A DNA stretch of 64,000 nt, taken from Macrostomum lignano (Eukaryota). The notes under the pieces were generated by a model. The model did no database searches. It was not told the origin of the DNA and worked only from the letters and a program-made list of their open reading frames with translations. A program made the translations under genes and the position numbers. Location of the stretch: NCBI GenBank assembly GCA_002269645.1, contig NIVC01000040.1:744001-808000 (forward strand), given 5' to 3'. This document shows, piece after piece, positions 13,312-64,000 of the stretch; position 1 is the stretch's first letter; the number at the start of each line of letters is the position of its first letter.

Positions 13312-14709
13312 CTACTGGCCTTTCATGCCGCCGCCACCGCAGCTGTTCGGACTGAACTGCAGAACTCGGATGGACTCAACCAGCTCGCTATTGTCCATCT
13401 TCATCAAGTAGGCCACCGCCCCATAGTTCTTATTGTTAAAGTAACCTGGCGCCGAGAACACCGTGATGCACTGCATATTGTGCTGCACAGAGAGCCCCAT
13501 CTTCATCACCTGGTGGGCGCGGATCACCGCTTTCAATGAATTCCTACGAACAAACTGATCGGTGGCGTCTGAATTGAACTTGTAGCCGATGCCGCGGCTG
13601 CTCGCTGAGAACACTGGCTTACCTCGGCTAGTCTTCTTCTGCTGCTGGCCTTGAGCTGACTTCTGCTTCGGTTGGTCCTTGGTTGGTTTTTCAACCATCT
13701 CCGGCGTGTCCTCCATCGGGTCGCTCCAGAGCAGGTCGGTCTCCAAGTCGCGATGCGACAGCGACGAGAACGGCCGACGGATCGCGTTGACAACCCGTTT
13801 GAGATTCTCCACGCCAGGCTGCTGGCGTAATAAAACCTCCGAGATGCCGCCGTGGCAGCAGAAGAACTGCGAATCAATCAGCGCCGCGACGGGCAGGTAG
13901 TCGAACACCCGGTTGAAGATTGTGTACACGTTCAAATGGTTGAACCGATTCAAGCACTCGTTCTTGAAGCCGTAGCGCTTATTCACTTTGGCTACCTCGT
14001 GGTTGCCGCGGAGAATGTACACCCTGTCAGGATAGCGGATCTTCATCAGCAGCAGCGTGACAATGACCTCCAGGCTGCACTGGCCTCGGTCAACGTAGTC
14101 GCCAAGGAACAGCACGCTATCAGTTGGCGGGTAGCCGAGGGCGTCCAGAATGCGCAGCAGATCCCGGAACTGGCCGTGCAAATCGCCCACAATGAAAGTT
14201 GGCCTGCCAATCTCCAATAAAGCCGGCTCCCGGCGGAAATGGTCTCTAGACAGCTTGGCAACTGTGTAGCATAACTGTTCGGTGACAAATGAAGCCTTCA
14301 GGTTGCCTTGTTGGTCGAATTCGCTGTGCAAAATCTGGTGCTCAACGTCGGTGAGGTCAATATCGATCATTGACATGGGCTGGCTACAGTCGTCAAATAG
14401 AGACACCCGGTCGATCTCTTCCTGAGACGGCATGCTCAAGATGCTGTTGCGGTAGCTGACTCGCTCTGTCGGTGTCTTCCCGTCGGCTTCAAATACGCGG
14501 GGATCGAGTGCGTTGCCGATGTTGCCCGCCTTGCCCATTTTTGTCTGCTGGGCTTGCGGCATTGCTATTGGTCTATTAGTGCAGTTTTCGATATAGCCCA
14601 AACTATGAAGGCGGCTTTTCTGTGGAGTGTGTACTTTAGCCAGAAACCGGGACATAGACAGTGTAGCATCAACTGACTGACCATACCGGTGTATATATAG
14701 TTCTCGCAT
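13312..14709 (-). CDS. Intronless PP1-like (PPP family) Ser/Thr protein phosphatase, 465 aa
   Basis: GDLHGQ, GDYVDRG, RGNHE, CHGG, LLWSDP, RAHQV and FSAPGY are all present in one uninterrupted ORF. Confidence 0.93.
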   Translation of the reverse strand: MRELYIHRYGQSVDATLSMSRFLAKVHTPQKSRLHSLGYIENCTNRPIAMPQAQQTKMGKAGNIGNALDPRVFEADGKTPTERVSYRNSILSMPSQEEIDRVSLFDDCSQPMSMIDIDLTDVEHQILHSEFDQQGNLKASFVTEQLCYTVAKLSRDHFRREPALLEIGRPTFIVGDLHGQFRDLLRILDALGYPPTDSVLFLGDYVDRGQCSLEVIVTLLLMKIRYPDRVYILRGNHEVAKVNKRYGFKNECLNRFNHLNVYTIFNRVFDYLPVAALIDSQFFCCHGGISEVLLRQQPGVENLKRVVNAIRRPFSSLSHRDLETDLLWSDPMEDTPEMVEKPTKDQPKQKSAQGQQQKKTSRGKPVFSASSRGIGYKFNSDATDQFVRRNSLKAVIRAHQVMKMGLSVQHNMQCITVFSAPGYFNNKNYGAVAYLMKMDNSELVESIRVLQFSPNSCGGGGMKGQ

Positions 14710-18449: not shown

Positions 18450-21400
18450 TTATTGATTGCCGCCTTCCTTGGCCTCCGCGTCAGGCTCCTTCTCGTCTGA
18501 AAGTGGCATTTTGTTAGGGGAGCATTTTGATTGTGCGATTGACAAATCAGGTTAAGGATTAGTGAGACCCCTCACTGAAGGATTAGTGAGACACCTCACT
18601 GAAGGATTAGTGAGACACCTCATTGAAGGATTAGTGAGACACCTCACTGAAAGATTAGTGAGACACCTCACTGAAGGATTAGTGAGACCCTCACCGAAAG
18701 ATTAGTGAGACACCTCACTGAAGGATTAGTGAGACACCTCACTGAAAGATTAGTGAGACACCTCACTGAAGGATTAGTGAGACACCTCACTGAAGGATTA
18801 GTGAGACACCTCACTGAAAGATTAGTGAGACACCTCACTGAAGGATTAGTGAGACCCTCACCGAAAGATTAGTGAGACACCTCACTGAAGGATTAGTGAG
18901 ACACCTCACTGAAGGATTAGTGAGACACCTCACTGAAAGATTAGTGAGACACCTCACTGAAGGATTAGTGAGACACCTCACTGAAAGATTAGTGAGACAC
19001 CTCACTGAAGGATTAGTGAGACACCTATCTGAATTGAGAATACACTACACTGACTGACTTAGTTCTAAAATCCCATTGAATGACAGTAAAAATCGCATAA
19101 AAATCCCAAAAAATTAAAAACTCAGCTCACCGTCTCCAGCTGGCTGCATATCCGAGGTCCACAGGGTGAGATTATCCCGCAGCAGTTGCATAATTAGGGT
19201 GCTGTCCTTGTACGACTCCTCGGACAGCGTGTCCAGCTCGGCGATGGCCTCATCAAAAGCGGTCTTGGCCAGTTTGCAGGCCCGATCAGCTGAGTTGAGA
19301 ATCTCATAGTAGAACACGGAGAAGTTGAGAGCGAGGCCCAGCCTGATGGGGTGAGTTGGCTTCAACTGGGTGTTGGCAATGTCCGTGGCGGCCTTGTAGG
19401 CAGTCAGGCTGTTCTCGGCCGCCTCCTTGCGCTCGGCTCCAGTGGCGAATTCGGCCAGGTAGCGCAGGTAATCGCCCTTCATCTTGTAGTAGAACACTCG
19501 CGACTCGGCCACCGTGGCGCTAGGAATCAGGTGACTGTCCAGAACGTCAAGAATATCGTCGCAAATCTTTTTGAGCTCCTGTTCAACCTGGGTACGGAAC
19601 GTGCGAACAACATCGAGCTTTTCGCTGCCGGACTTGCTCTCCTCCTTCTGCTCGATGCTGCTCACAATGCGCCAGGAGGCTCGCCTGGCTCCGATAACAT
19701 TTTTATAAGCCACAGAGAGCAGGTTGCGCTCTTCGACTGTCAGTTCAACGTCCATGACAGCCACAGCCTTCATTGCGTCCACCATTTCTGCGTGTCATAG
19801 TGGGTTCAGCTTATTTTCAGTAAAATATTTAAAAAATCAATAGAGATCGATTTTGGTATAACCTGATCACTGATTTTCTAATTCAAATTCAAAATTTAAA
19901 GATGCATATCCTATACTAAGTCATATTCATTGCTACCATATATGCACAACCTGAATTTTACCTAACCTAGTGCAAAATTGTTTTCTGTTGTTATTTATAT
20001 CAACATTCACCAAGGTTGTATATCAGTTATTCAGAGTTTAGAAGAGTTGTGTCTCTTATTAGCTACTTTCTCTTGAATAATCTATTCTCTTCTCCCTTTG
20101 TTGTTGTTCTTTCCTGCCTGACTCTTATCTCTGTTGCTCTCTTAATCTTCTTTCTTCCTGTACTTCTCTTTTCTTCTATCTCTCTTCTCATCACAATTTT
20201 TGACCATTTCCTTTTTTCACTTTTCTGGTTTGCAGCCATGCACTAGATGTTCAATTTGGCTTTTGAAGTAAAAACATTTGCCAACCACTAACCTAATGCA
20301 TACATTGACACACATTTATATGAAGGCAAGTTTTTTCTTTGGTGCTAAGATGCAAGAAGGTAACTAAGGATAAGGATGCTATTTGCATCTCTTTTGCATA
20401 AAAAACCTAGATGCTAAGTCATTTTAAAGCTTTGGTAAGTACAATATCTAATGCATATAAATATAATTATTTAAATACAGATTAAGCCTACAACCTATTT
20501 TAAAATATGAAGAATATTTTAGGTGATTAAAACTAAAAATAAATACATGTATTTAAAACTATTTATAGGAGCTATTAGTTTAGTATATAAAAAATGAAGT
20601 TTATATATTTTAATATTCAATTTCAATATATATATCTAGTCAATATCTGTACACAGATATATACCAAATAAATTATCTTACACAAAGCTTTATATATATC
20701 AATTTAAAAACATTATTAGACTAGTAATTTTGATATTGAATTTCAATTATCCGAAGTTAAAAACTTGAAGTATTAATTATATGTTTAAATTTTTATATAT
20801 TTTTTACCTTAAATGTTTATATAATTGTTACCTTAAAAACATAGAAAGCAGTACAACTACAATATATAGATAACAATTGTGACTATACCTATTGGAATAA
20901 GTATAGAAAACCTATGGATACGCAACACAGGGTCCAAAATTATGTATGATATAGATATAATATAGAATATATTAACTTTTGCACTAAATATAGGTATAGT
21001 AATAGTATTAACGAGATGATAAGGCACTTAGCTTTAATAAAGGTCATGGTTACTCCTATTATTTACTCAAAATCACACTGCTATAACACCAAAATTTTAT
21101 GCCATGACTTAATTTTTATTTTTAAGAATTCAAAACTTTTACTAAACTTTAAAACAGCTGTTTTTTTTGCTAAAAACTGATATTCTTTTGTTTTAATTTA
21201 TGATTTTCTTGTGATTGTGTTAATATTTTTATTTTAGTTTCTGATTATTTTTAAAGAGCTTTCAATGTTGGTTGATTTTTAACTACACAATTACATTAAC
21301 CTTGAACTTGGAATTTTTAATACACTGACTGTGTGCACTTCATGTTGAACCTGAAAATTCTATACACCAAGTGTACGCCCAGATTGTCAGCAAGAGCAAA

Positions 21401-55100: not shown

Positions 55101-55379
55101 TCACTGCTCACCCGAGATGGACACTGCAGCAATACGTCCAAACAGTTCCTTGTCGGGCTTGAGCAGCAACAGTTTCTCTTCGTGCGAGAACAATCTGGTG
55201 TCGTTAACAACTTCGTTGAATGCCCGTCTGAGTTGGTTGATGCGTCTGCGCAGATTTGATACCAGCACAGCGTAGCAGAACCCGGCTACGAGACGGAACA
55301 GCAGAAGAAGAGCTATCAGCCAAGTGAGCGCCTTGGCCAGCACAGACACCAGAGTGACTAATTGCATAGGTAGCATCAT
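55101..55379 (-). CDS. Candidate small membrane protein (92 aa, or spliced at tcgg|gtgag near the 3' end)
   Basis: ATG start, a long hydrophobic N-terminal stretch, then basic RRRINQLRR; no recognisable family. Confidence 0.35.
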   Translation of the reverse strand: MMLPMQLVTLVSVLAKALTWLIALLLLFRLVAGFCYAVLVSNLRRRINQLRRAFNEVVNDTRLFSHEEKLLLLKPDKELFGRIAAVSISGEQ

Positions 55380-55471
55380 ATATCGCTTTTTATATAGGCT
55401 TGAGTTTTTCTCTCTGCTGTTCTATTGCAATTTCGGGGCTGCAGCTTGCAACGTTTTTGCCATAGACAACT

Positions 55472-55899: not shown

Positions 55900-56189
55900 C
55901 CATAGACAACTAAGGAATCTTCAGTATAGCCAATCGATGCGAACGGGAGCTTCACAGGGCAAAATTGCATATTGGCTTTATAATGCGCATTCTATGGTCA
56001 GAATAATGGTCTCGAGGCGAGCAAAGCTAGAGCTCGTTAACAAAACATTATTGATCTTAGAGAGAATTGTCCTGCGATTTACACCAATCAATGCAAATCT
56101 CCAAGGCACAGAGAGTGTACATGCCTGAATATTAGAAAGTTATTACCCTGTGTGAGCGTGTGTATGAGTGCCTTCCTGCGTACAGTATA

Positions 56190-57692
56190 AGACAGCACCC
56201 CCATCAGACAGCACCCCCATCAGACAGCCACCCCATCATACAGCCACCCCATCAGACAGCCACCCCATCAGACAGCCACCCCATCAGACAACCACCCCAT
56301 CAGACAACCACCCCATCAGACAACCACCCCATCAGACAGCCACCCCATCATACAGCCACCCCATCAGACAGCCACCCCATCAGACAGCCACCCCATCAGA
56401 CAGCCACCCCATCAGACAACCACCCCATCAGACAGCCACCCCATCAGACAGCCACCCCCCAGACAGCCACCCAATCAGACAACTACCCCCACCAGACAGC
56501 CACCCCCACCAGAGAGCCATCCCCACCAGCAGAGAGCCACCCATCAGACAGCCACCCCATCAGACAGCCACCCCATCAGACAGCCACCCCCACCAGACAG
56601 CCATCCCACCAGACAGCCACCCCATCAGACAGCCACCCCATCAGACAGCCACCCCATCAGACAGCCACCCCATCATACAGCCACCCCATCAGACAGCCAC
56701 CCCATCAGACAGCCAACCCATCATACAGCCACCCCATCAGACAACCACCCCATCAGACAACCACCCCATCAGACAGCCACCCCATCAGACAGCCACCCCA
56801 TCAGACAGCCACCCCATCAGACAGCCACCCCATCAGACAGCCACCCCATCAGACAACCACCCCCACCAGACAGCCACCCACCAGACAGCCACCCCCAGCC
56901 CACCCATCAGACAGCCACCCCATCAGACAGCCACCCCATCAGACAGCCACCCCATCAGACAGCCACCCCATCAGACAGCCACCCCATCAGACAGCCACCC
57001 CATCAGACAGCCACCCCATCAGACAGCCACCCCATCAGACAGCCATCCCCATCAGACAGCCACCCCATCAGACAGCCACCCCATCAGACAGCCACCCCAT
57101 CATACAGCCACCACATCAGACAGCCACCCCATCAGACAGCCACCCCATCATACAGCCACCCATCAGACAGCGACCCCATCAGACAGCCACCCCATCAGAC
57201 AGCCACCCCAGACAGCCACCCCATCAGACAACCACCCCACAGACAGCCACCCCATCAGACAACCACCCCATCAGACAGCCACCCCATCAGACAGCCACCC
57301 CATCAGACAGCCACCCCATCAGCAGCCACCAGACAGCCATCCCCATTAGACAGCCACCCCACAGACAGCCACCCCCACCAGACAATCATCCCCACCAGCA
57401 GACAGCCACTCCATCAGACAGCCACCCCATCAGACAGCCACCCCCATCAGCCAGCCACCACCATCAGACAGCCATCCCCATTAGACAGCCACCCCATCAG
57501 ACAGCCACCCCATCAGACAACCACCCCATCAGACAGCCACCCCATCAGACAGCCACCCCATCAGACAGCCACCCCCCAGACAGCCACCCCATCAGACAAC
57601 CACCCCCACCAGACAGCCACCCCCACCAGACAGTCATCCCCACCAGCAGACAGCCACTCCACCAGACAGCCACCCCATCAGACAGCCACCCC
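56190..57692. repeat. 16-bp minisatellite (atcagacagccacccc), ~1.5 kb
   Basis: Tandem units; explains the repetitive 606-aa and 393-aa ORFs. Confidence 0.95.
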
Positions 57693-60210
57693 TTTGACTT
57701 ACTTGATTTAGCTACAGGGCAGTCCGAAGACGCAGCGGGGAGGCGAGAGTCGCCCATTCCGCTAAACCCTGGTGACCCGCTTCGGCAATGGTGCGAGGCC
57801 AGTCAGGGCGGTCCGCCAGTACGTCCTGCAGCGTTCTCTTCGTTTAGGAAGAGAGAGGCTCGTCTAGTTGCCCGAAGGAACCGGACGAGCCGTGAGATGT
57901 TCTCAGGTCTACAAACGTCATCGATAGATGGGTTTGGACCGAGGTGGTTAAGCCGCTCCCTGGTGAAGAACGGGCATTGACAAACGAAATGCTGAGCATC
58001 TTCGTTGTCGTACTCGCAAAATGGGCACAGTTCATTCCGGATGTCGCCCCGAAGAAAGCAGTGCCTAGCGAAGCAACCATGCCCCGTGAGGGTCATAGCA
58101 AGAGCCCGGATGTCCTTCCTGCTTTGGTTCAGGAGGACAGTTCGGAGCTTTCGGGATGGACGAGGGACCGCCGCGCGCGATTGGCGGCAGGTGGTCAGGT
58201 TCATCCATCTGTCCCTGTGCAGGGCGGAGGCCCAGGCATCAATGCTGCGATTGATGATGGCCGCAGGGATTGGAGCCAAGGGCAGAGGTCCCTGAAGGGA
58301 GTCGCCGCTCCCTTGCTTTGCAAGCGAATCGGCCAGCTCGTTTCCAGGGAAACCCGCGTGGCCTGGGATCCATTTGTGACAGAGGGCTAGCAGAGCCGCC
58401 TGGCTGTCGGAGTGAAAAACGATAGTTTTACCGGAGGTGTTTTTGCTGCAAAGCTCTGCAGCGCAAGAGCAAATAGCAAGGACCTCGTTCTGGAAGACAG
58501 TAGAGAGTCTTCCAGTGTGCTGGGCATGCGTGGCGAGCACGCGGCCATTGATGAGAATGCAGACCCCAAAGCCGGAGAGACAGCCTTTTAGGGATCCGTC
58601 TGTGTAGCAGTGGACCTCTTGGGGATTCCAGTGGTCGTTAGCCTCCTCTCGAGGAGGAAGAATGACCTTGAATCGAAGACAGAGGTTGAGCGTGCGAGGT
58701 TCCCCGTCCGAAAGGACGTTGAGGCCGCCACTCTCCTGCAGATCTTTGAGACAGAGGTCGGAATGAGGCAAAAGCTTGCGCTTAGCCATTGCCCTCTGGG
58801 GCTTGAGAGTAATGCCGGTGTCGATGAGACGCTGGGCTGCTGGCTGCCTCACTGCGGACGAAAATGTCCAGTGGAGGCAGGTCGAGGAAGGCGTTGAGGC
58901 TGTCGAAGGGAGCAGAGGGCGGGGCGCCCATTATCATTCGACATGCACGCCCCTGCAGTCGTTTAAGAGCCTCAAAGCAGGTCTTAATCTGCAGGGCACT
59001 CGCCCAGATCAGTCCGGCATAGGAGATCGCCGGCCTGACCATAGCATGCAGTGTAGATCCACCAGAGGCGTTTGGGGGTAAGGCCCCAAGTAGTGCCAAC
59101 CGCCCTGCGCAGTTGCGCCAGGATCGCGAAGGCCTTTTTAGTCTTGGCATGAACATGCGGGGACCAGTTCAGCCTGTGATCAAGGGTGACCCCAAGACAC
59201 TTGACTTGCTTACGGAAGGGGATTTCCTGTCCGTAGAGCGTGAGATGGCGGGATTGCCACTTCGTCCTGCTGGTGAACATGACCACAGCGGTCTTAGTCC
59301 CGGAGAGCTTCAGACCGCATCGGTCCGCCCAACGTTCAGCAGTGTTGATGAAGTTCTGAAGGAGATCACGCAGGGTGTCCGGCGATGGCTCAGAGGCTAC
59401 CGCCGTGACATCGTCCGCATAACCGACCTTCAGAATAGGGTTAGGACAGGCGTCCCGTAGGAGCTCGTCGATAACCATGTTCCAGAGAATTGGAGAGAGG
59501 ACACCACCCTTCGGACAGCCTTTGCAGACAGGAACCGTCCTTTTATGACCTAGCAGGTGTGCCGTAGCAGATCTGTGGCTAATCATGTACATGATCCATC
59601 GCGTGAGATGAGAATGTGTCATTCTCGTTTGTAGAGCCCTTCGAAACGCATCGAAAAGGACGTTGTCAAAGGCTCCCACGATATCCAGGAAGACCGCTAG
59701 GGCATAGCCGTTGCCAAGCACAGCTTTCTCCAGCGTGTCCCGCCCGAAAAGCATGCTGGTTTTTGCTAAGCGGTATGTTCTTTAGTTCCACGGACTGCAG
59801 GCGCCAGAGCACCAGCAGTTCCATCAGTTTGACCATCGAGGAGGTCAAGCTGATTGGTCTAAACGATTCAACAGAATGGTAGTCCGGGCGGCCGGGCTTA
59901 GGAATGAAAATCACCCTCGCCTCAGTCCACGGCTTCGGGACATAACCAAACGTAATGCAGGCTTTAAGAAGCTTGCACAGGTGCGTAAGGAACCTCTTGC
60001 ATTGGACCGCCTCTCTGATTAGGGCTGGTACAATGCCGTCGGGTCCAGGCGCCTTGTAAGGCTTGAAGGAGTTTGCAGCTTTGATGATGCGCTCCTTCGT
60101 GATAAAGGAGGAGGCAAGAAACGACCCGCCTTCGGCATGATCCGAGGGGTCATTTGTGAGAGCCTCGTTGGGGAAGGAGGCTGAAAGCATAAGCTCTAGC
60201 GTCTCCCCAG
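57693..60210 (-). mobile_element. 5'-truncated non-LTR retrotransposon with RT, RNase H and CCHC (LOA/R1-group-like), frameshifted
   Basis: KAPGPDGI, FLDIVGAFDNV, GCPKGGVLSPILWN, YADD; RNase H YTDGS, SDSQAAL, WIPGHAGFPGNELADSLAK; CPFC..HFVCQC. Candidate 9-bp TSD agccacccc at 57684-57692 and 60211-60219. Confidence 0.88.
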
Positions 60211-60524
60211 AGCCACCCCACAAGATAGCACCCATTAAAACAAAAGCAAAGTTTTGATTCTAAGCACATATTATGACCAAAAGTGCATAGTTTCTTTACG
60301 AGTAATTGGTAATTAATATTTGTTTCAGTAAAACTCATTTCTAGAGATATATTTCCAAAACAAAATGCCTATCATTTAAGCGTTGAAGCAAAGAAAGTGA
60401 TGTAATAATAAGAGTAATAAGAGTAATGAAATCCCCTAAATAAATAAGTCTATTTCTGCAAGCGCACCTGCAGCAACTCTATAGGTATAAGTTAGTAAAT
60501 AACGGAATTAATAATTTACTATGG

Positions 60525-62257
60525 CTAATATACGTCGTTACAGAAGTCGGTTTTGCAGCGAATGCAACTGGAAAAAGTGCAGGTTGGACATTTCGGCTCG
60601 CAGTCGCCGCAGCCAGCGCTGACTGTCTGAAAAAGAATTAAAATTTCGAAATTTGTAGCATTCTATTGTACTACTTGTAGTAAAAATGCTAGAAACTTAT
60701 CTTTATACTGTATAATCATTTTTGTAGCTGATTTTATACATGTACCAAAGATAAGAGAAGTGAGACAGAGAGACAGAGAGATGCCCATTAGAGAGACACA
60801 GATACCCTTTAGAGAGACACAAAGATAATTCAATAGAGAGACGGAGATGCCCATTTGGGAGATAGAGGGATATGCATTAGAGAGACCATACCCATTAGGG
60901 AGACAGAGATACCCATTAGAAAGACAGAGATACCCATTAGAGAGACAGAGAGATACCCATTGGGGAGAGATACTCATTTGGGAGACAGAGAGATACCCAT
61001 TAGAGAGACAGAGATACCTATTAGAAAGACAGAGAGACCCATTAGAGAGACAGAGATACCTATTAGAAAGACAGAGAGACCCATTAGATAGACAGAGAAA
61101 TACCCATTAGAGAGGCGCTCTATCTAATGTTAGATTACCCAGCCTTCAATCGTCAGATCAGTACAAAACCCCTGCAGAAGAAGGAGTGCTGTTTTAGCAG
61201 AACAAATTTCCTGCTAGGGGAAATTGCTCACAGAGTAGTGCTCCTTCTTGGGATCGAAGAATTGTCCAGAATTCGAATTCGAGGTATGGGTGTAGGTCAC
61301 CTCTACTTTAACGTGGCATTCAAAAAATTTCCTGTGACATTCGCCGCGTATAGGCATGGCAGAGGTTGGCCAAATACCCTGCCGCTTGTAATAGACGCAT
61401 TTTATCGCCTTGGTCGGCTGCTCTGCGGGCGCGGGTTCGAGTTCCAGTTTCCTCTTCACTACACTCTACTCCTCCTAACTACACTCTGCTCATCCCAACT
61501 ACACTCTACTCCTCCCAACTACACTCTACTCCTCCCAACTACACTCTACTCCTCCCAACTACACTCTACTCCTCTCAACTACACTCTACTCCTCCCAACT
61601 ACACTCTACTCCTCCTAACTACATTCTACTCCTCCCAACTACACTCTACTCCTCTCAACTACACTCTACTCATCCTAACTACATTCTACTCCTCCCAACA
61701 CACTCTACTTCTCCCAACTACACTCTACTCCCAGCTACACTCTACTCCTCCTAACTACACCCTACTCTTCTCAACTACATTCTACTCCTCCCAACTGCAC
61801 CCTTACTTTCCTCTCAACTACACTCTACTCCTCCCAACTACACTCGACTCCTCCCAACTACACTCTACTCCTCCCAACTACACTCTACTCCTCCTAACTA
61901 CATTCTACTCCTCCCAACTACACTCTACTCCTCTCAACTACACTCTACTCATCCTAACTACATTCTACTCCTCCTAACTACATTCTACTCCTCTCAACTA
62001 CACTCTACTCCTCTTAACTACACTCTACTCCCCCCAGCTACACTCTACTCCTCTCAACTACACTCTACTCCCCCCAGCTACACTCTACTCCTCTTAACTA
62101 CACTCTACTCCTCCCAACTGCACCCTTACTTTCCTCTCAACTACACTCTACTACTCTCAACTATATTTTACTCAAAGCAACTTTAATAATATACACACTT
62201 ACGATTGAACAGTAAAAAAAATACAGTTATCAAAACCGTGAACGCTGGTCTGGGCAT
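60525..62257 (-). CDS. Small secreted cysteine-rich three-finger (LU/Ly6-like) protein
   Basis: join(complement 62203-62257, 61232-61422, optional 61139-61171, 60525-60626), phase-consistent GT-AG. MPRPAFTVLITVFFLLFNQQPTKA|IKCVYY..GECHRKFFECHVKVEV..HYS[GFCTDLTIEGW]TVSAGCGDCEPKCPTCTFSSCIRCKTDFCNDVY*. Confidence 0.72.
60770..61110. repeat. ~21-bp minisatellite (gagagacagagatacccatta)
   Basis: Intronic in the three-finger gene. Confidence 0.88.
61460..62165. repeat. ~20-bp minisatellite (acactctactcctcccaact)
   Basis: Intron 1 of the three-finger gene. Confidence 0.92.
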
Positions 62258-63776
62258 CTGTTGCCAATTAGCTTCTTTTATTAGGCAAAATTGTCTTCTT
62301 CCACCCAAGTCAAGATGAAAAGAGCCTTTTCGCTTTGTTGGTACAAGCTGTATATTAACAGCAAAAATGTTAATATTGAGATTTTTTAGACATTTAGACA
62401 ATTAGTGTTTTGCAATATTCTATGGTTAAAACCAAAGTGCTTTATTTTTATCACATCGTATCCTTGGTGCTGGCGCCCCTTGGTGCTGGCGCCCCTTGAT
62501 TAATATCTTTGATTAATATTGCATTGCACGACAGGAGTATAATATATATTCAGCCTAGTGACAGTAAGTAAGGGATAATTGCTACGTCGAATCCCCGATA
62601 ATTAGAAGTTTTTGTAACTATCATTTTTTACGAATCGGTGATTTTTTATGTACTTTTCACATGACCGAAGCCAAAAGTTAGTCAGTCAGACAGTCACTGG
62701 CACTGCTCAGCAACTTCCTGACAAGGGAGCTTGGAGCTTGGAGCATTGTGCAGAGCATGCCAGAGGAAACCCTAATTACATGGTCGAAAAGAACGCTCCC
62801 TGTCTTGCCCTAACCACGACTAATTCTAAAGTTAGCGAAACAAATATAGAAACGACTGTATACTGCATTAATCGAATTATAAACATTGCGCTTATATCTC
62901 GCAAAGAGAGTTTCCAAAATTTCTGGCGGCACAGCACAAGACAAGGCAATAATAGTCATGGCAAGCAGCAAAAGGAAAAAGGCACCCTTGGGCTGTGGCC
63001 TAGATGCCTCTTTGGATTGGACCGAGGGCCCGAATCGTGCGCGTGTGCCGTGCGTTTTCTGTCTGTGAGGAGAGGACGGGAGAGGAGGAAAGGAAAAAAA
63101 CTGGGCCGCCTGGCTGCCAGTCAACCCACGGCCCAAGCTTTACTTCAGGTTCAACTGTTCAGGGAGCAGAACACAATCCAGTCGGCAAAGCCTGTCCAAA
63201 AATATTGTGTTGTGCAAAAGTTAAAACTCTCCACCTCCTCTCCCTCTCCCCTCAGCATGGATTGGATTGAAACCGGCGCTACCCTGGCGCGTATGTACAT
63301 TCTAGCGGTGGGGAATCACGTGATCAAATTGTACACTAATCCATTGTACAGTGTCAGATAGAGTTTGGAAAAGGGAGAGAGGGAAAGAGAGAAAAGAGGG
63401 GGTGGCGGGGCGCAGTGCTAGCAGGCAACATACACATAACAGATTCTACTTGCCCTTAGTCCACTATCTCACACACGAACACTCCGCCTGCTGACTGAAT
63501 ATATTTTGGCACTGCATTTAAAACACAGAAACTCTTAAATTCATTGGGCTGGCAAAGAAGGCCGCCCCTCGGGCAAGATATAATAAATAAAGCGCTTTAC
63601 TTTTTCAAAGCACATCAAACGAAGTTCTGTGCATTTGTCTGCTTACTCTTGTGCTTAGACAAATTTTCGACTAGTAAGACTGAAGGAAACGAGAACAGCA
63701 CTGAAGATTGAAGTTTTAACAATTCTGTCGTTGACTTTAGACATATAGCTTTATTTTAATATTATTAATTATTACA

Positions 63777-64000
63777 ATGACGCTAGCAACAACTTGTCGT
63801 CGACTGCTGACTCCGGCGGCAACCGCCTTGCGTCGATACTATTCGCCAATTTCTGATTCGCCTCGCAATCGAGTGGCTATTCTGGGCGCCTGCGGCGGCC
63901 TCGGCCAGCCATTGTCACTAATAATGAAGCGCTCGGAATATATTGCCGAATTGGCGCTATACGACAAATTGGACACCGCCGGCTTGTGCGCCGATCTTAG
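63777..64000 (+). CDS. MDH2: Mitochondrial malate dehydrogenase-like, 5' partial
   Basis: MTLATTCRRLLTPAATALRRYYS (presequence-like), then RVAILGACGGLGQPLSLIMK..LALYD..AGLCADL; runs off the window. Confidence 0.85.
   Translation, partial: MTLATTCRRLLTPAATALRRYYSPISDSPRNRVAILGACGGLGQPLSLIMKRSEYIAELALYDKLDTAGLCADL

Follow-up and report, generated by a model that had tools for sequence, protein, structure and literature searches.

A 64,000-nucleotide stretch of Macrostomum lignano DNA (100% identical to contig NIVC01000040.1 of GCA_002269645.1; hereafter the window) carries on its minus strand a set of exons that was initially annotated, from the nucleotide sequence, as a cryptic gene for a secreted three-finger (LU, or Ly6/uPAR/toxin-like) protein with an optional 33-nt micro-exon and no GPI tail. 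The locus raises the questions of whether the gene is genuine, what form of protein it encodes and which fold that protein adopts, in a flatworm used to study regeneration, adhesion and reproduction. We find that it is probably one of three near-identical copies of the Mlig003445 family, in which three constitutive coding exons encode a 115-aa precursor, while the fold of the product can be named only tentatively.

Gene structure and predicted product

Three minus-strand exons with GT-AG splice sites (62257-62203, 61422-61232 and 60626-60525) join to encode the 115-aa precursor, in which a 24-aa signal peptide precedes a mature part that starts at IKC, holds 10 cysteines and ends in CKTDFCN-DVY-stop. 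The features of the gene are listed below, with a slash marking boundaries in residues or nucleotides.

62258..62371, minus strand: 5' UTR of at least 114 nt, running into the start codon (window stretch homologous to P0003)
62203..62257, minus strand: coding exon 1, Met1 to Asn18 plus 1 nt (55 nt; junction as in P0001 and P0003)
61423..62202, minus strand: intron 1 (780 nt), nearly all 20-nt minisatellite
61232..61422, minus strand: coding exon 2, end of the signal peptide (QQPTKA/IKC) and mature residues 1-58 with Cys 1-3 (191 nt)
60627..61231, minus strand: intron 2, phase 0 (605 nt), with a 21-nt minisatellite at 60767-61114
60525..60626, minus strand: last coding exon, TVSAGCGDCEPKCPTCTFSSCIRCKTDFCNDVY plus TAG, with 7 Cys in 33 aa

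Exon 1 reads MPRPAFTVLITVFFLLFN plus 1 nt, ends at the donor ATC/GTAAGT and encodes the n- and h-regions of the signal peptide, intron 1 being in phase 1. Exon 2 is bounded by the acceptor CCGCAG/ and the donor TCT/GTGAGC, and the last exon follows the acceptor TTTTTCAG and terminates in ...CIRCKTDFCNDVY-TAG. The minisatellite of intron 1 occupies 61458-62163 with ~35 copies of its 20-nt unit, and in the paralogous loci L002 and L003 described below the introns are 548 and 681 nt (intron 1) and 384 and 571 nt (intron 2) long, respectively. Upstream of the start codon, the RNA-derived P0003 (PAA73392.1, from locus L003) has 38 codons open ahead of Met1, with neither a stop nor an ATG.

As read from the sequence, the N-terminus has the anatomy of a signal peptide, with MPRP, a 13-residue hydrophobic core and NQQPTKA/I, and MPRP-AFTVLITVFFLLF-NQQPTKA would be cleaved after Ala24, because Thr stands at -3 and Ala at -1. 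The 91-aa mature peptide beginning at IKC retains all 10 Cys, a content within the criterion of at least 10 Cys per 120 aa (PMC8763315), and would be expected to fold in the ER with five disulfides. Because the chain stops three residues after its last Cys-Asn and lacks a hydrophobic tail, the protein would leave the cell in soluble form, where it may act as a small, disulfide-stabilised binding protein. The signal-peptide exon, the IKC start, the CKTDFCN box and the stop three codons further on, from which the initial annotation had reasoned, are all in place, and its cysteine counts are reproduced, at 10 in 115 aa when the 33-nt segment is skipped and 11 in 126 aa when it is included. These features support the prediction of a spliced gene whose small product has 10 Cys, would be secreted and lacks a GPI tail.

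Public models of the gene

The gene cannot be called cryptic, since it is already annotated in GenBank and UniProt, the window copy itself only as a 75-aa fragment. Public entries for the same protein are UniProt A0A1I8GI60, to which the spliced window product is 98% identical over the full length, and the GenBank RNA-seq-derived models BOX15_Mlig003445g1-3, the GenBank members of the same cluster being PAA83186, PAA92775 and PAA73392. The junctions between exons 1 and 2 and between exon 2 and the last exon are those of P0001 and P0003 (...LLFNQQPTKAIKC... and ...EHYSTVSAGC..., respectively), and DVY-stop ends every public model. These independent models agree with the signal peptide, junctions and C-terminus predicted here, and so argue for the secreted, GPI-less product that had been proposed. 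The GenBank models derive from genome-guided RNA-seq assembly and TransDecoder, and alternative isoforms were stripped from them before submission (PMC5730564).

The window and L002 copies are both deposited as a 75-aa ORF from Met41, without signal peptide or first Cys; the local GenBank model begins within exon 2, Met41 corresponding to window position 61357. The minisatellite that fills intron 1 probably explains why exon 1 was not joined in these two transcript models, but trans-splicing onto exon 2 might also account for the Met41 starts. The gene id and accessions were not found in the indexed literature, and the gene id is absent from the text supplements of M. lignano germline/neoblast, genome and positional RNA-seq studies and from those of the intestine, prostate-screen and aneuploidy studies, the latter absence being weak evidence. 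The main practical gain of the present analysis is better annotation, given the fragment models in the window and L002 and a misleading UniProt name (see below).

Homologue searches, paralogous copies and selection

A word-indexed search of 5.8 billion proteins returned one cluster, the gene itself, and phmmer against 1.84 billion representatives yielded no relatives; four other phmmer matches were rejected as translated tandem repeats that scored through multiple low-complexity stretches. No relative was found among PDB sequences, no Pfam family scored above its cutoff, and none of 151 pattern matches in JGI metagenome contigs was confirmed. The proposal of a lineage-specific secreted protein is consistent with the lack of a relative in every database searched, and our verdict is that the product is probably an ordinary lineage-specific secreted Cys-rich protein. 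Its importance is modest, as such orphans are common, and our results gave no sign of toxicity or of a pathogen link. A neuropeptide precursor was also considered, but the sequence has no G-K/R-K/R amidation or cleavage repeats.

The paralog search suggested at the outset was productive, identifying three paralogous loci (L001, L002 and L003) with near-identical gene copies. All three encode an identical mature peptide: its 273 nt (55 synonymous, 218 non-synonymous sites) contain 3 synonymous substitutions and no non-synonymous one, whereas the introns diverge by ~5-7%, a contrast that marks a constrained coding gene. All 102 nt of the last exon are identical in the three paralogs, exon 2 of the window copy has 4 nt differences from either of the other two (5 variable sites over the three copies), all of them synonymous, and exon 1 shows two amino-acid differences, L9V and F13L, both hydrophobic-to-hydrophobic. 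While the selection test draws on only three substitutions (p ~0.008 under a simple site-count null), the comparison shows what appears to be purifying selection on the mature peptide, and a gene that is more than a chance ORF. The window holds no tandem paralog, a six-frame scan for C..C-x4/5-CN boxes having matched only this gene.

A 33-nt candidate exon in intron 2

61139..61171, minus strand: 33-nt segment GFCTDLTIEGW, most likely a pseudo-exon (acceptor TTCTGCAG, donor TGG/GTAATC)

Inclusion of this segment as a real alternative micro-exon was proposed to switch the product between monomer and disulfide-linked forms, by way of an 11th, unpaired Cys. The segment is indeed the best-formed cassette of intron 2, with a CAG acceptor, an 87% pyrimidine tract, a GTAA donor, an open frame and a length that is a multiple of 3, and it alone among 21 open in-frame AG..GT candidates in the intron combines a pyrimidine-rich YAG acceptor with a GTRA donor. 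It is also intact in L001 and L003. However, no UniProt or GenBank model contains it and the protein search gave no second cluster, although absence from the models is weak evidence because isoforms were removed at GenBank submission, so that rare inclusion may still occur. In L002 2 of the 33 positions differ, creating an in-frame TGA, and at 2/33 the segment has diverged as much as the intron on either side of it (3-7 of 60). By contrast, whatever changes the true exons carry within the mature coding sequence are synonymous. The open frame itself is unremarkable, an 11-codon frame being open by chance with a probability of ~0.6 and intron 2 alone offering 21 open AG..GT candidates. We consider the micro-exon switch very unlikely, and the segment is most likely, on comparison of the three copies, a well-formed pseudo-exon and not a conserved coding exon.

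The region downstream of the stop codon

60436..60533, minus strand: hypothetical 3' intron of 98 nt holding the stop codon (read from the sequence only; in no public model)
60376..60435, minus strand: hypothetical hydrophobic tail exon GISLLLLLLLLHHFLCFNA plus stop, present in three of three loci
57040..60211, minus strand: non-LTR retrotransposon, 5'-truncated and frameshifted, with RT and RNase H, outside the gene (from ORFs and Pfam)

The LINE noted ~300 bp downstream of the gene is real. Its 5' junction lies at ~60211, 314 bp past the stop codon, and its frameshifted ORFs match Pfam RVT_1 (1.6e-21) and RNase_H (1.2e-08), while the 3' boundary is approximate and falls inside a minisatellite. 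The insertion is common to L003, L002 representing the empty site. Scanning the window for Rfam families and tRNAs gave no matches.

It had also been suggested that a gac/gtatat donor could lead towards a GPI exon in this region, and a concrete candidate for such a tail exon was found, though in no public model. A second isoform would splice out the 98-nt intron (60534/60533 to 60436/60435), which has the donor GAC/GTATAT, a TACTAAC element at 60497-60491 and the T-rich acceptor TTATTTATTTAG, and would append an exon beginning 89 nt past the stop to read ...CKTDFCND-GISLLLLLLLLHHFLCFNA, a product GPI- or tail-anchored like canonical Ly6 proteins. N-D-G would be acceptable small omega-site residues. 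The tail ORF is kept in all three loci, the sole change being a conservative L-to-I in L002; a 2-nt indel sits in the putative intron and not in the tail, and comparable hydrophobic tail ORFs are scarce in the window (~0.1 per kb of strand), so that ~0.03 would be expected within the first 300 nt. Against this, the DVY-stop of every public model makes the retained form the assembled major isoform, GTATAT makes a weak donor, pyrimidines account for only ~60-67% of the acceptor tract, and an AGTAAA poly(A)-like signal lies 5 nt beyond the stop. The candidate tail is moreover short, with a spacer that is nearly nil; hydrophobic peptides arise in every frame of a T-rich 3' UTR, and the conservation contrast between tail (1/60 differences) and flanks (19/250) is not significant (Fisher p=0.14). 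Part of the product could be membrane-anchored if the tail exon were used, but a GPI-like isoform of this kind is speculative and, on balance, improbable.

Fold of the mature protein

The three-finger fold has five β-strands and three loops, which extend from a core with three or more conserved disulfides (PMC3812095). Queried with the precursor, the inclusion isoform and the mature peptide, the Pfam families UPAR_LY6 (PF00021), Toxin_TOLIP (PF00087), QVR (PF17064), Activin_recp (PF01064) and CD59 (PF25152) gave no match at E<=10, whereas all nine LU controls matched UPAR_LY6 and eight of them also Toxin_TOLIP (E 5e-6 to 2e-18). hhalign against an alignment of nine LU sequences aligned only the last 8 residues, CKTDFCND, with 4.85% probability. 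Unfiltered hmmsearch placed the protein at the level of shuffled sequences: it obtained -4.3 bits with a vertebrate LU HMM and -3.7 bits with an HMM of Fasciola Ly6 proteins, values that 535-567 of 1000 full shuffles and 227-235 of 1000 Cys-fixed ones equalled or exceeded in each case. Vertebrate LU domains, as a positive control, reached 8-26 bits on the flatworm HMM. AF2 single-sequence models, built with no homologs for alignment, had mean pLDDTs of 43.0 (P0001, 98% identical to the window protein) and 42.1 (P0002) and were unusable. The initial assignment to the LU superfamily is therefore not borne out by profile methods, and what remains of it is the spacing of the cysteines.

That framework fits LU proteins only in part. 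A Cys at mature position 3 (Cys3), the six residues separating the second Cys from the third (C-x6-C), a gap equal to that of the matching core cysteines in 9/9 vertebrate LU controls, and the terminal C10-N, present as C-KTDF-C-N with Asp at -3, are exact matches, accompanied by an xGC ahead of the second half and by 10 Cys in 91 aa. The C1-x2-C2 motif that defines flatworm Ly6 proteins (PMC8763315) is missing, however, the second Cys lying at mature position 23, a gap of 19 compared with 2 in all 9 vertebrate and 14 Fasciola reference sequences; the motif is not required across the wider three-finger superfamily (PMC3812095). The penultimate Cys pair is C-IR-C, with a gap of 2, and neither CC nor C-x1-C. 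This gap is 0 in 8/9 vertebrate and 9/14 Fasciola references, uPAR D1, the ninth vertebrate reference, having no such pair, and it is 1 in the other 5/14 Fasciola sequences, so the CC doublet is also missing from some true Fasciola Ly6 proteins. Loop II, at 33 residues, is longer than in the LU controls (12-22), and the 'finger III' stretch, at 11 residues, is shorter (15-19 in the controls) and holds two extra Cys.

Ly6 genes have a phase-1 intron that splits the signal peptide and a second intron in loop II, an arrangement that the present gene seems to resemble. Domain annotation is, in addition, known to miss flatworm Ly6 proteins (PMC8763315). Weighing these points against the failed profile tests and the irregular loops, we regard a divergent three-finger-like topology as the single most likely named fold, yet as a tentative one; the mature protein would then be SLURP-like, with a short third finger and an extra CxxC disulfide. 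The missing LU profile signal is also consistent with a protein that is not three-fingered, whose last exon would be a CXXC-type Cys-rich module attached to an unrelated N-terminal β-hairpin, or with a wholly new disulfide-rich fold. The Cys spacing of the last exon is C-x2-C-x3-C-x2-C-x4-C-x2-C-x4-C, which places seven Cys within 24 residues in a C-x2-C-x3-C-x2-C...C-x2-C rhythm similar to Cx2Cx3Cx2Cx5-7Cx2C, the repeat of proprotein-convertase/furin-like Cys-rich domains, and the module has an exon of its own. Yet it occurs as a single copy and not as a repeat array, the Furin-like, GF_recep_IV and VSP Pfam families gave no match at E<=10, and a CXXC module leaves both Cys3 and C-x4-CN unexplained, so that this reading too is possible but doubtful.

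The database name, '4Fe-4S ferredoxin-type domain-containing protein' in UniRef, suggests an iron-sulfur domain, and a weak Pfam Fer4 match does extend across CGDCEPKCP. It covers 11 residues at 7.0-10.3 bits (E 0.68-7.2) against a cutoff of 21.1, the motif is CxxCxxxCP instead of CxxCxxCxxxCP, and the N-terminal signal peptide would send the protein into the oxidising secretory pathway; we reject the ferredoxin reading, which has next to no chance of being correct, and regard '4Fe-4S ferredoxin-type' in UniProt as an artefact that stems from Cys spacing. We also give very little credence to the most elaborate scenario, namely that the Mlig003445 genes are founders of a Macrostomum-restricted, highly divergent three-finger family, lacking C1xxC2, with C-x2-C in the position of CC and with an additional CxxC in a stub third finger, whose product toggles between soluble and lipid-anchored forms by retention or removal of the stop-bearing 98-nt intron that precedes a poly-Leu tail exon. 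Should a structure prove three-fingered, the sequence limits of the LU superfamily would be widened by an example that domain profiles miss, as with fluke Ly6 proteins (PMC8763315).

Comparison with known Cys-rich proteins

Furin-like and CXXC repeats share the Cys rhythm of the Mlig003445 last exon, but those known form tandem arrays within large receptors or proteases, whereas here a single 33-aa module without a Pfam match is present. Short-chain snake three-finger toxins, a class with eight Cys, are like the M. lignano protein in having no loop-I C-x2-C, a C-x6-C gap from the second to the third Cys, secretion without an anchor and a C-x4-CN end; they also have a CC doublet and a full third finger, in which the M. 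lignano protein differs. It has in addition no Toxin_TOLIP or Toxin_cobra-type Pfam match and no phylogenetic link to these toxins.

The CD59-like and Ly6 proteins of flatworms (Schistosoma SmCD59/SmLy6 and Fasciola gigantica FgLy6; PMC3812095, PMC8763315) belong to the same phylum and share ten Cys, C10-N and a signal peptide, and one Fasciola Ly6 subgroup likewise parts the penultimate Cys pair, as C-x1-C-x4/5-CN. All those listed have C1-x2-C2, however, and 20/20 FgLy6 are predicted to carry GPI anchors (PMC8763315), neither of which applies to the annotated M. lignano form, which scores at shuffled level on a Fasciola Ly6 HMM that detects vertebrate LU domains. Compared with SLURP1 and SLURP2, the M. 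lignano protein lacks the N-terminal C-x2-C, has C-x2-C where they have CC, a loop II of 33 residues (theirs 20-22) and 7 Cys in its last 24 residues, and shows profile similarity only in the final 8 residues. It nevertheless has in common with both a signal peptide, 10 Cys in a domain of ~75-90 aa, a Cys at mature position 3, C-x6-C, and a C-x4-C-N end that has an acidic residue at -3, is followed by 2-5 residues and, in the annotated M. lignano form, carries no GPI signal.

Gene structure and product

Window positions 59000-64000 are 100% identical to contig NIVC01000040.1 of Mlig_3_7 (GCA_002269645.1), taken as L001, the copy of the Mlig003445 gene in this window (an L001 coordinate p converts to 64000-(p-7358) in the window); the remainder of the window is eukaryotic DNA rich in repeats. 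The four segments and splice sites proposed by the initial annotation were reproduced exactly on the minus strand (slashes mark splice or cleavage boundaries):

62257-62203, minus, exon 1, donor ATC/GTAAGT
61422-61232, minus, exon 2, acceptor CCCGCAG/, donor TCT/GTGAGC
61171-61139, minus, 33-nt segment, acceptor TTCTGCAG/, donor TGG/GTAATC
60626-60525, minus, last exon, acceptor TTTTTCAG/, 3' end TGT AAC GAC GTA TAT TAG

The product has 115 aa and 10 Cys without the 33-nt segment, and 126 aa and 11 Cys with it. Its N-terminus, MPRPAFTVLITVFFLLFNQQPTKA/IKC, contains a basic n-region followed by a hydrophobic core of 13 residues, with Thr at -3 and Ala at -1. The gene is constitutive, with three coding exons that encode the 115-aa precursor; we propose that a signal peptide would be cut after Ala24 to leave a 91-aa soluble secreted protein, probably with five disulfides and a putative extracellular binding role.

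The gene had been considered cryptic, but it is already public as a hypothetical protein in UniProt/UniRef and GenBank. UniRef A0A1I8GI60, representing four identical M. lignano entries, matches the 115-aa product at 98% identity over its full length, and its 90% cluster also contains three GenBank entries:

PAA83186.1 and PAA92775.1 (BOX15_Mlig003445g2 and g3), 75 aa, beginning at internal Met41
PAA73392.1 (BOX15_Mlig003445g1), 153 aa, partial, with 38 codons of 5' UTR read through into Met1

The GenBank models derive from genome-guided RNA-seq assembly (StringTie/TACO/TBONE with TransDecoder; PMC5730564), and spliced transcripts joining exon 1 to exon 2 and exon 2 to the last exon therefore exist. 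Annotation of the window copy spans 61357-60525 only; since this local model begins at 61357, the proposed exon 1 correctly returns to it the signal peptide and first Cys. Both introns are mostly minisatellite (61458-62163, 20-nt unit x 35; 60767-61114, 21-nt unit x 16), with a copy number that varies between paralogs: L001, L002 and L003 have intron 1 lengths of 780, 548 and 681 nt and intron 2 lengths of 605, 384 and 571 nt, respectively. Minisatellite-filled introns may account for exon 1 being left unjoined by transcript assembly at two loci out of three, where the models are 75 aa long and start at an internal Met.

The automatic name of A0A1I8GI60, '4Fe-4S ferredoxin-type domain-containing protein', was traced to the run CGDCEPKCP. 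We rejected this reading: the Pfam Fer4 match reaches 7-10 bits where the cutoff is 21.1, the run is one Cys short of CxxCxxCxxxCP, and a secretory signal is present.

Paralogous loci and coding constraint

Two further loci lie on NIVC01000430.1 (L002) and NIVC01001014.1 (L003), and in all three the gene has two neighbours, one of Ldh/Mdh type and one encoding a small transmembrane protein:

L001 4283-7581, L002 1-7826, L003 5388-8137, strand opposite Mlig003445, Ldh_1_N/Ldh_1_C (lactate/malate dehydrogenase) gene, 347 aa, outside the window on the upstream side
55101-55385, minus, small predicted membrane-protein gene, 94-100 aa, conserved downstream of 3/3 Mlig003445 copies

Because the dehydrogenase gene flanks every copy, the loci are whole-segment duplicates, as a neopolyploid genome predicts; neopolyploidy is known in M. 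lignano (PMC10733133), and the three-locus pattern is consistent with it.

Intron and flank segments diverge by ~5-7% among the paralogs, and the last exon is identical at 102/102 nt. The 273 nt of mature coding region, with 55 synonymous and 218 non-synonymous sites, carry three substitutions; each is synonymous and at a third codon position, so that the mature peptide shows no amino-acid difference among the three loci. The only two amino-acid changes, L9V and F13L, fall in the signal-peptide core. All three substitutions would land on synonymous sites by chance with p ~0.008, a small sample, and the pattern is that expected of a constrained coding gene. Window 62462-62498, some 200 bp before the start codon, holds 2.3 copies of a 16-nt tandem repeat, CCTTGGTGCTGGCGCC; the matching site in L003 (9462-9874) is longer by ~400 bp, presumably because the repeat has expanded in the promoter region there.

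Candidate alternative exons

The 33-nt segment had been read as an optional micro-exon. The 605-nt intron 2 holds 21 AG..GT candidates (9-150 nt) that are in frame and open; this segment alone combines a YAG acceptor rich in pyrimidines with a GTRA donor, and is thus a well-formed pseudo-exon. It is missing from all public models, protein searches yielded no second cluster, the L002 version (GGGTTTTGTACTGATCTGACGATTTGAGGCTGG) carries an in-frame TGA, and the segment diverges at 2/33 positions, like adjacent intron (3-7/60) and unlike the exons. Although alternative isoforms were dropped from the models prior to GenBank submission (PMC5730564), leaving room for rare inclusion in L001 or L003, we consider a genuine micro-exon highly improbable.

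Every public model ends DVY-TAG. An isoform that removes the stop codon and adds a hydrophobic tail would use the GAC/GTATAT donor pointed out by the initial annotation and an acceptor 89 nt downstream of the stop:

60533-60436, minus, candidate stop-containing intron, 98 nt, donor GAC/GTATAT, TACTAAC, acceptor TTATTTATTTAG/
60435-60376, minus, candidate tail ORF, 19 codons, poly-Leu, reading GISLLLLLLLLHHFLCFNA-stop

Both elements (window 60376-60533) are kept in all three paralogs and appear in no annotation; the tail ORF differs by a single L-to-I in L002, where a 2-nt indel lies within the candidate intron. Equally strong hydrophobic tail ORFs occur at ~0.1 per kb of strand across the window, hence ~0.03 expected per 300 nt, which together with the TACTAAC, the position of the indel and the presence of the ORF in 3/3 loci favours such an isoform. 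Nevertheless, the donor is a weak one, pyrimidines make up only ~60-67% of the acceptor tract, an AGTAAA signal lies 5 nt past the stop, T-rich 3' UTR encodes hydrophobic residues in every frame, and conservation of the tail relative to its flanks is not significant (1/60 vs 19/250, p=0.14). We judge this isoform improbable, and prefer the soluble 91-aa product.

Downstream retrotransposon and other features

Compared with L002, the window contains ~3.17 kb extra, roughly 60211-57040, for which L002 is the empty site; the insertion, common to L001 and L003, is a LINE outside the Mlig003445 gene and no part of it. The insertion point borders a minisatellite with a 16-nt unit of the GGGGTGGCTGTCTGAT type, and a short GGGGTGGCT junction is shared.

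~57040-60211, minus, non-LTR retrotransposon (RT and RNase H), 5'-truncated, frameshifted
60235-59666, 59754-58984 and 58852-57803, minus, LINE ORFs, mutually out of frame, RVT_1 (1.6e-21) and RNase_H (1.2e-08)
19114-19785, minus, 14-3-3 protein ORF, Pfam 9e-100, apparently intronless
13312-14709, minus, calcineurin-like metallophosphoesterase ORF, 6.7e-33

A GC-rich minisatellite at 56160-57980 gives spurious plus-strand ORFs of 393-606 aa made of PSDSHPIRQPPHQTAT repeats; the only non-self matches of an exhaustive protein search were similar translated tandem repeats of other organisms.

Relationship to three-finger proteins

The initial annotation placed the product among Ly6/uPAR (LU) three-finger proteins; part of the Cys framework fits, but Pfam, hhalign and HMM-versus-shuffle tests were all negative, so that membership is not shown by sequence comparison. 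At E<=10, Pfam returned no three-finger family for the precursor, inclusion isoform or mature peptide. Among nine LU controls (CD59, LYNX1, SLURP1, SLURP2, LY6E, Ly6a, PSCA, LY6D and uPAR D1), UPAR_LY6 matched 9/9 non-toxin domains and Toxin_TOLIP 8/9. Against the control alignment, the hhalign match had 4.85% probability and was confined to CKTDFCND opposite Cq-DLCN, and the control HMM with HMMER filters off scored the mature peptide at -4.3 bits, a value equalled or exceeded by 535/1000 full and 235/1000 Cys-fixed shuffles. As domain annotation is known to miss flatworm Ly6 proteins (PMC8763315), a second HMM was built from 14 Fasciola gigantica Ly6 sequences in the supplement of that paper; it gave -3.7 bits (567/1000 shuffles at least as high), and 8-26 bits for the nine vertebrate domains as positive control.

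Protein searches found no homologs for an alignment, and AF2 without one gave pLDDT values of 43.0 and 42.1. The protein is lineage-specific at the sequence level and conserved across its three copies; flatworms commonly have small secreted orphan proteins rich in cysteine. A divergent three-finger topology is tentatively the most likely single named fold, with a CXXC-type or novel disulfide-rich fold about equally likely.

The Cys gaps of the mature peptide are [19, 6, 33, 2, 3, 2, 4, 2, 4], then N, compared with [2, 5-8, 4-5, 6, 12-22, 3-5, 15-19, 0, 4], then N, in the vertebrate controls. Like LU domains, the peptide has ten Cys, the first at position 3, an x6 gap, a terminal x4-CN and a short tail. 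Unlike them, it is without C1-x2-C2, its loop II has 33 residues rather than 12-22, and its 'finger III' has 11 residues with an extra CxxC in place of the 15-19 gap. It also carries C-x2-C where LU domains have CC; C-x1-C occurs at the last paired position in 5/14 Fasciola Ly6 proteins, so Cys adjacency there is not absolute.
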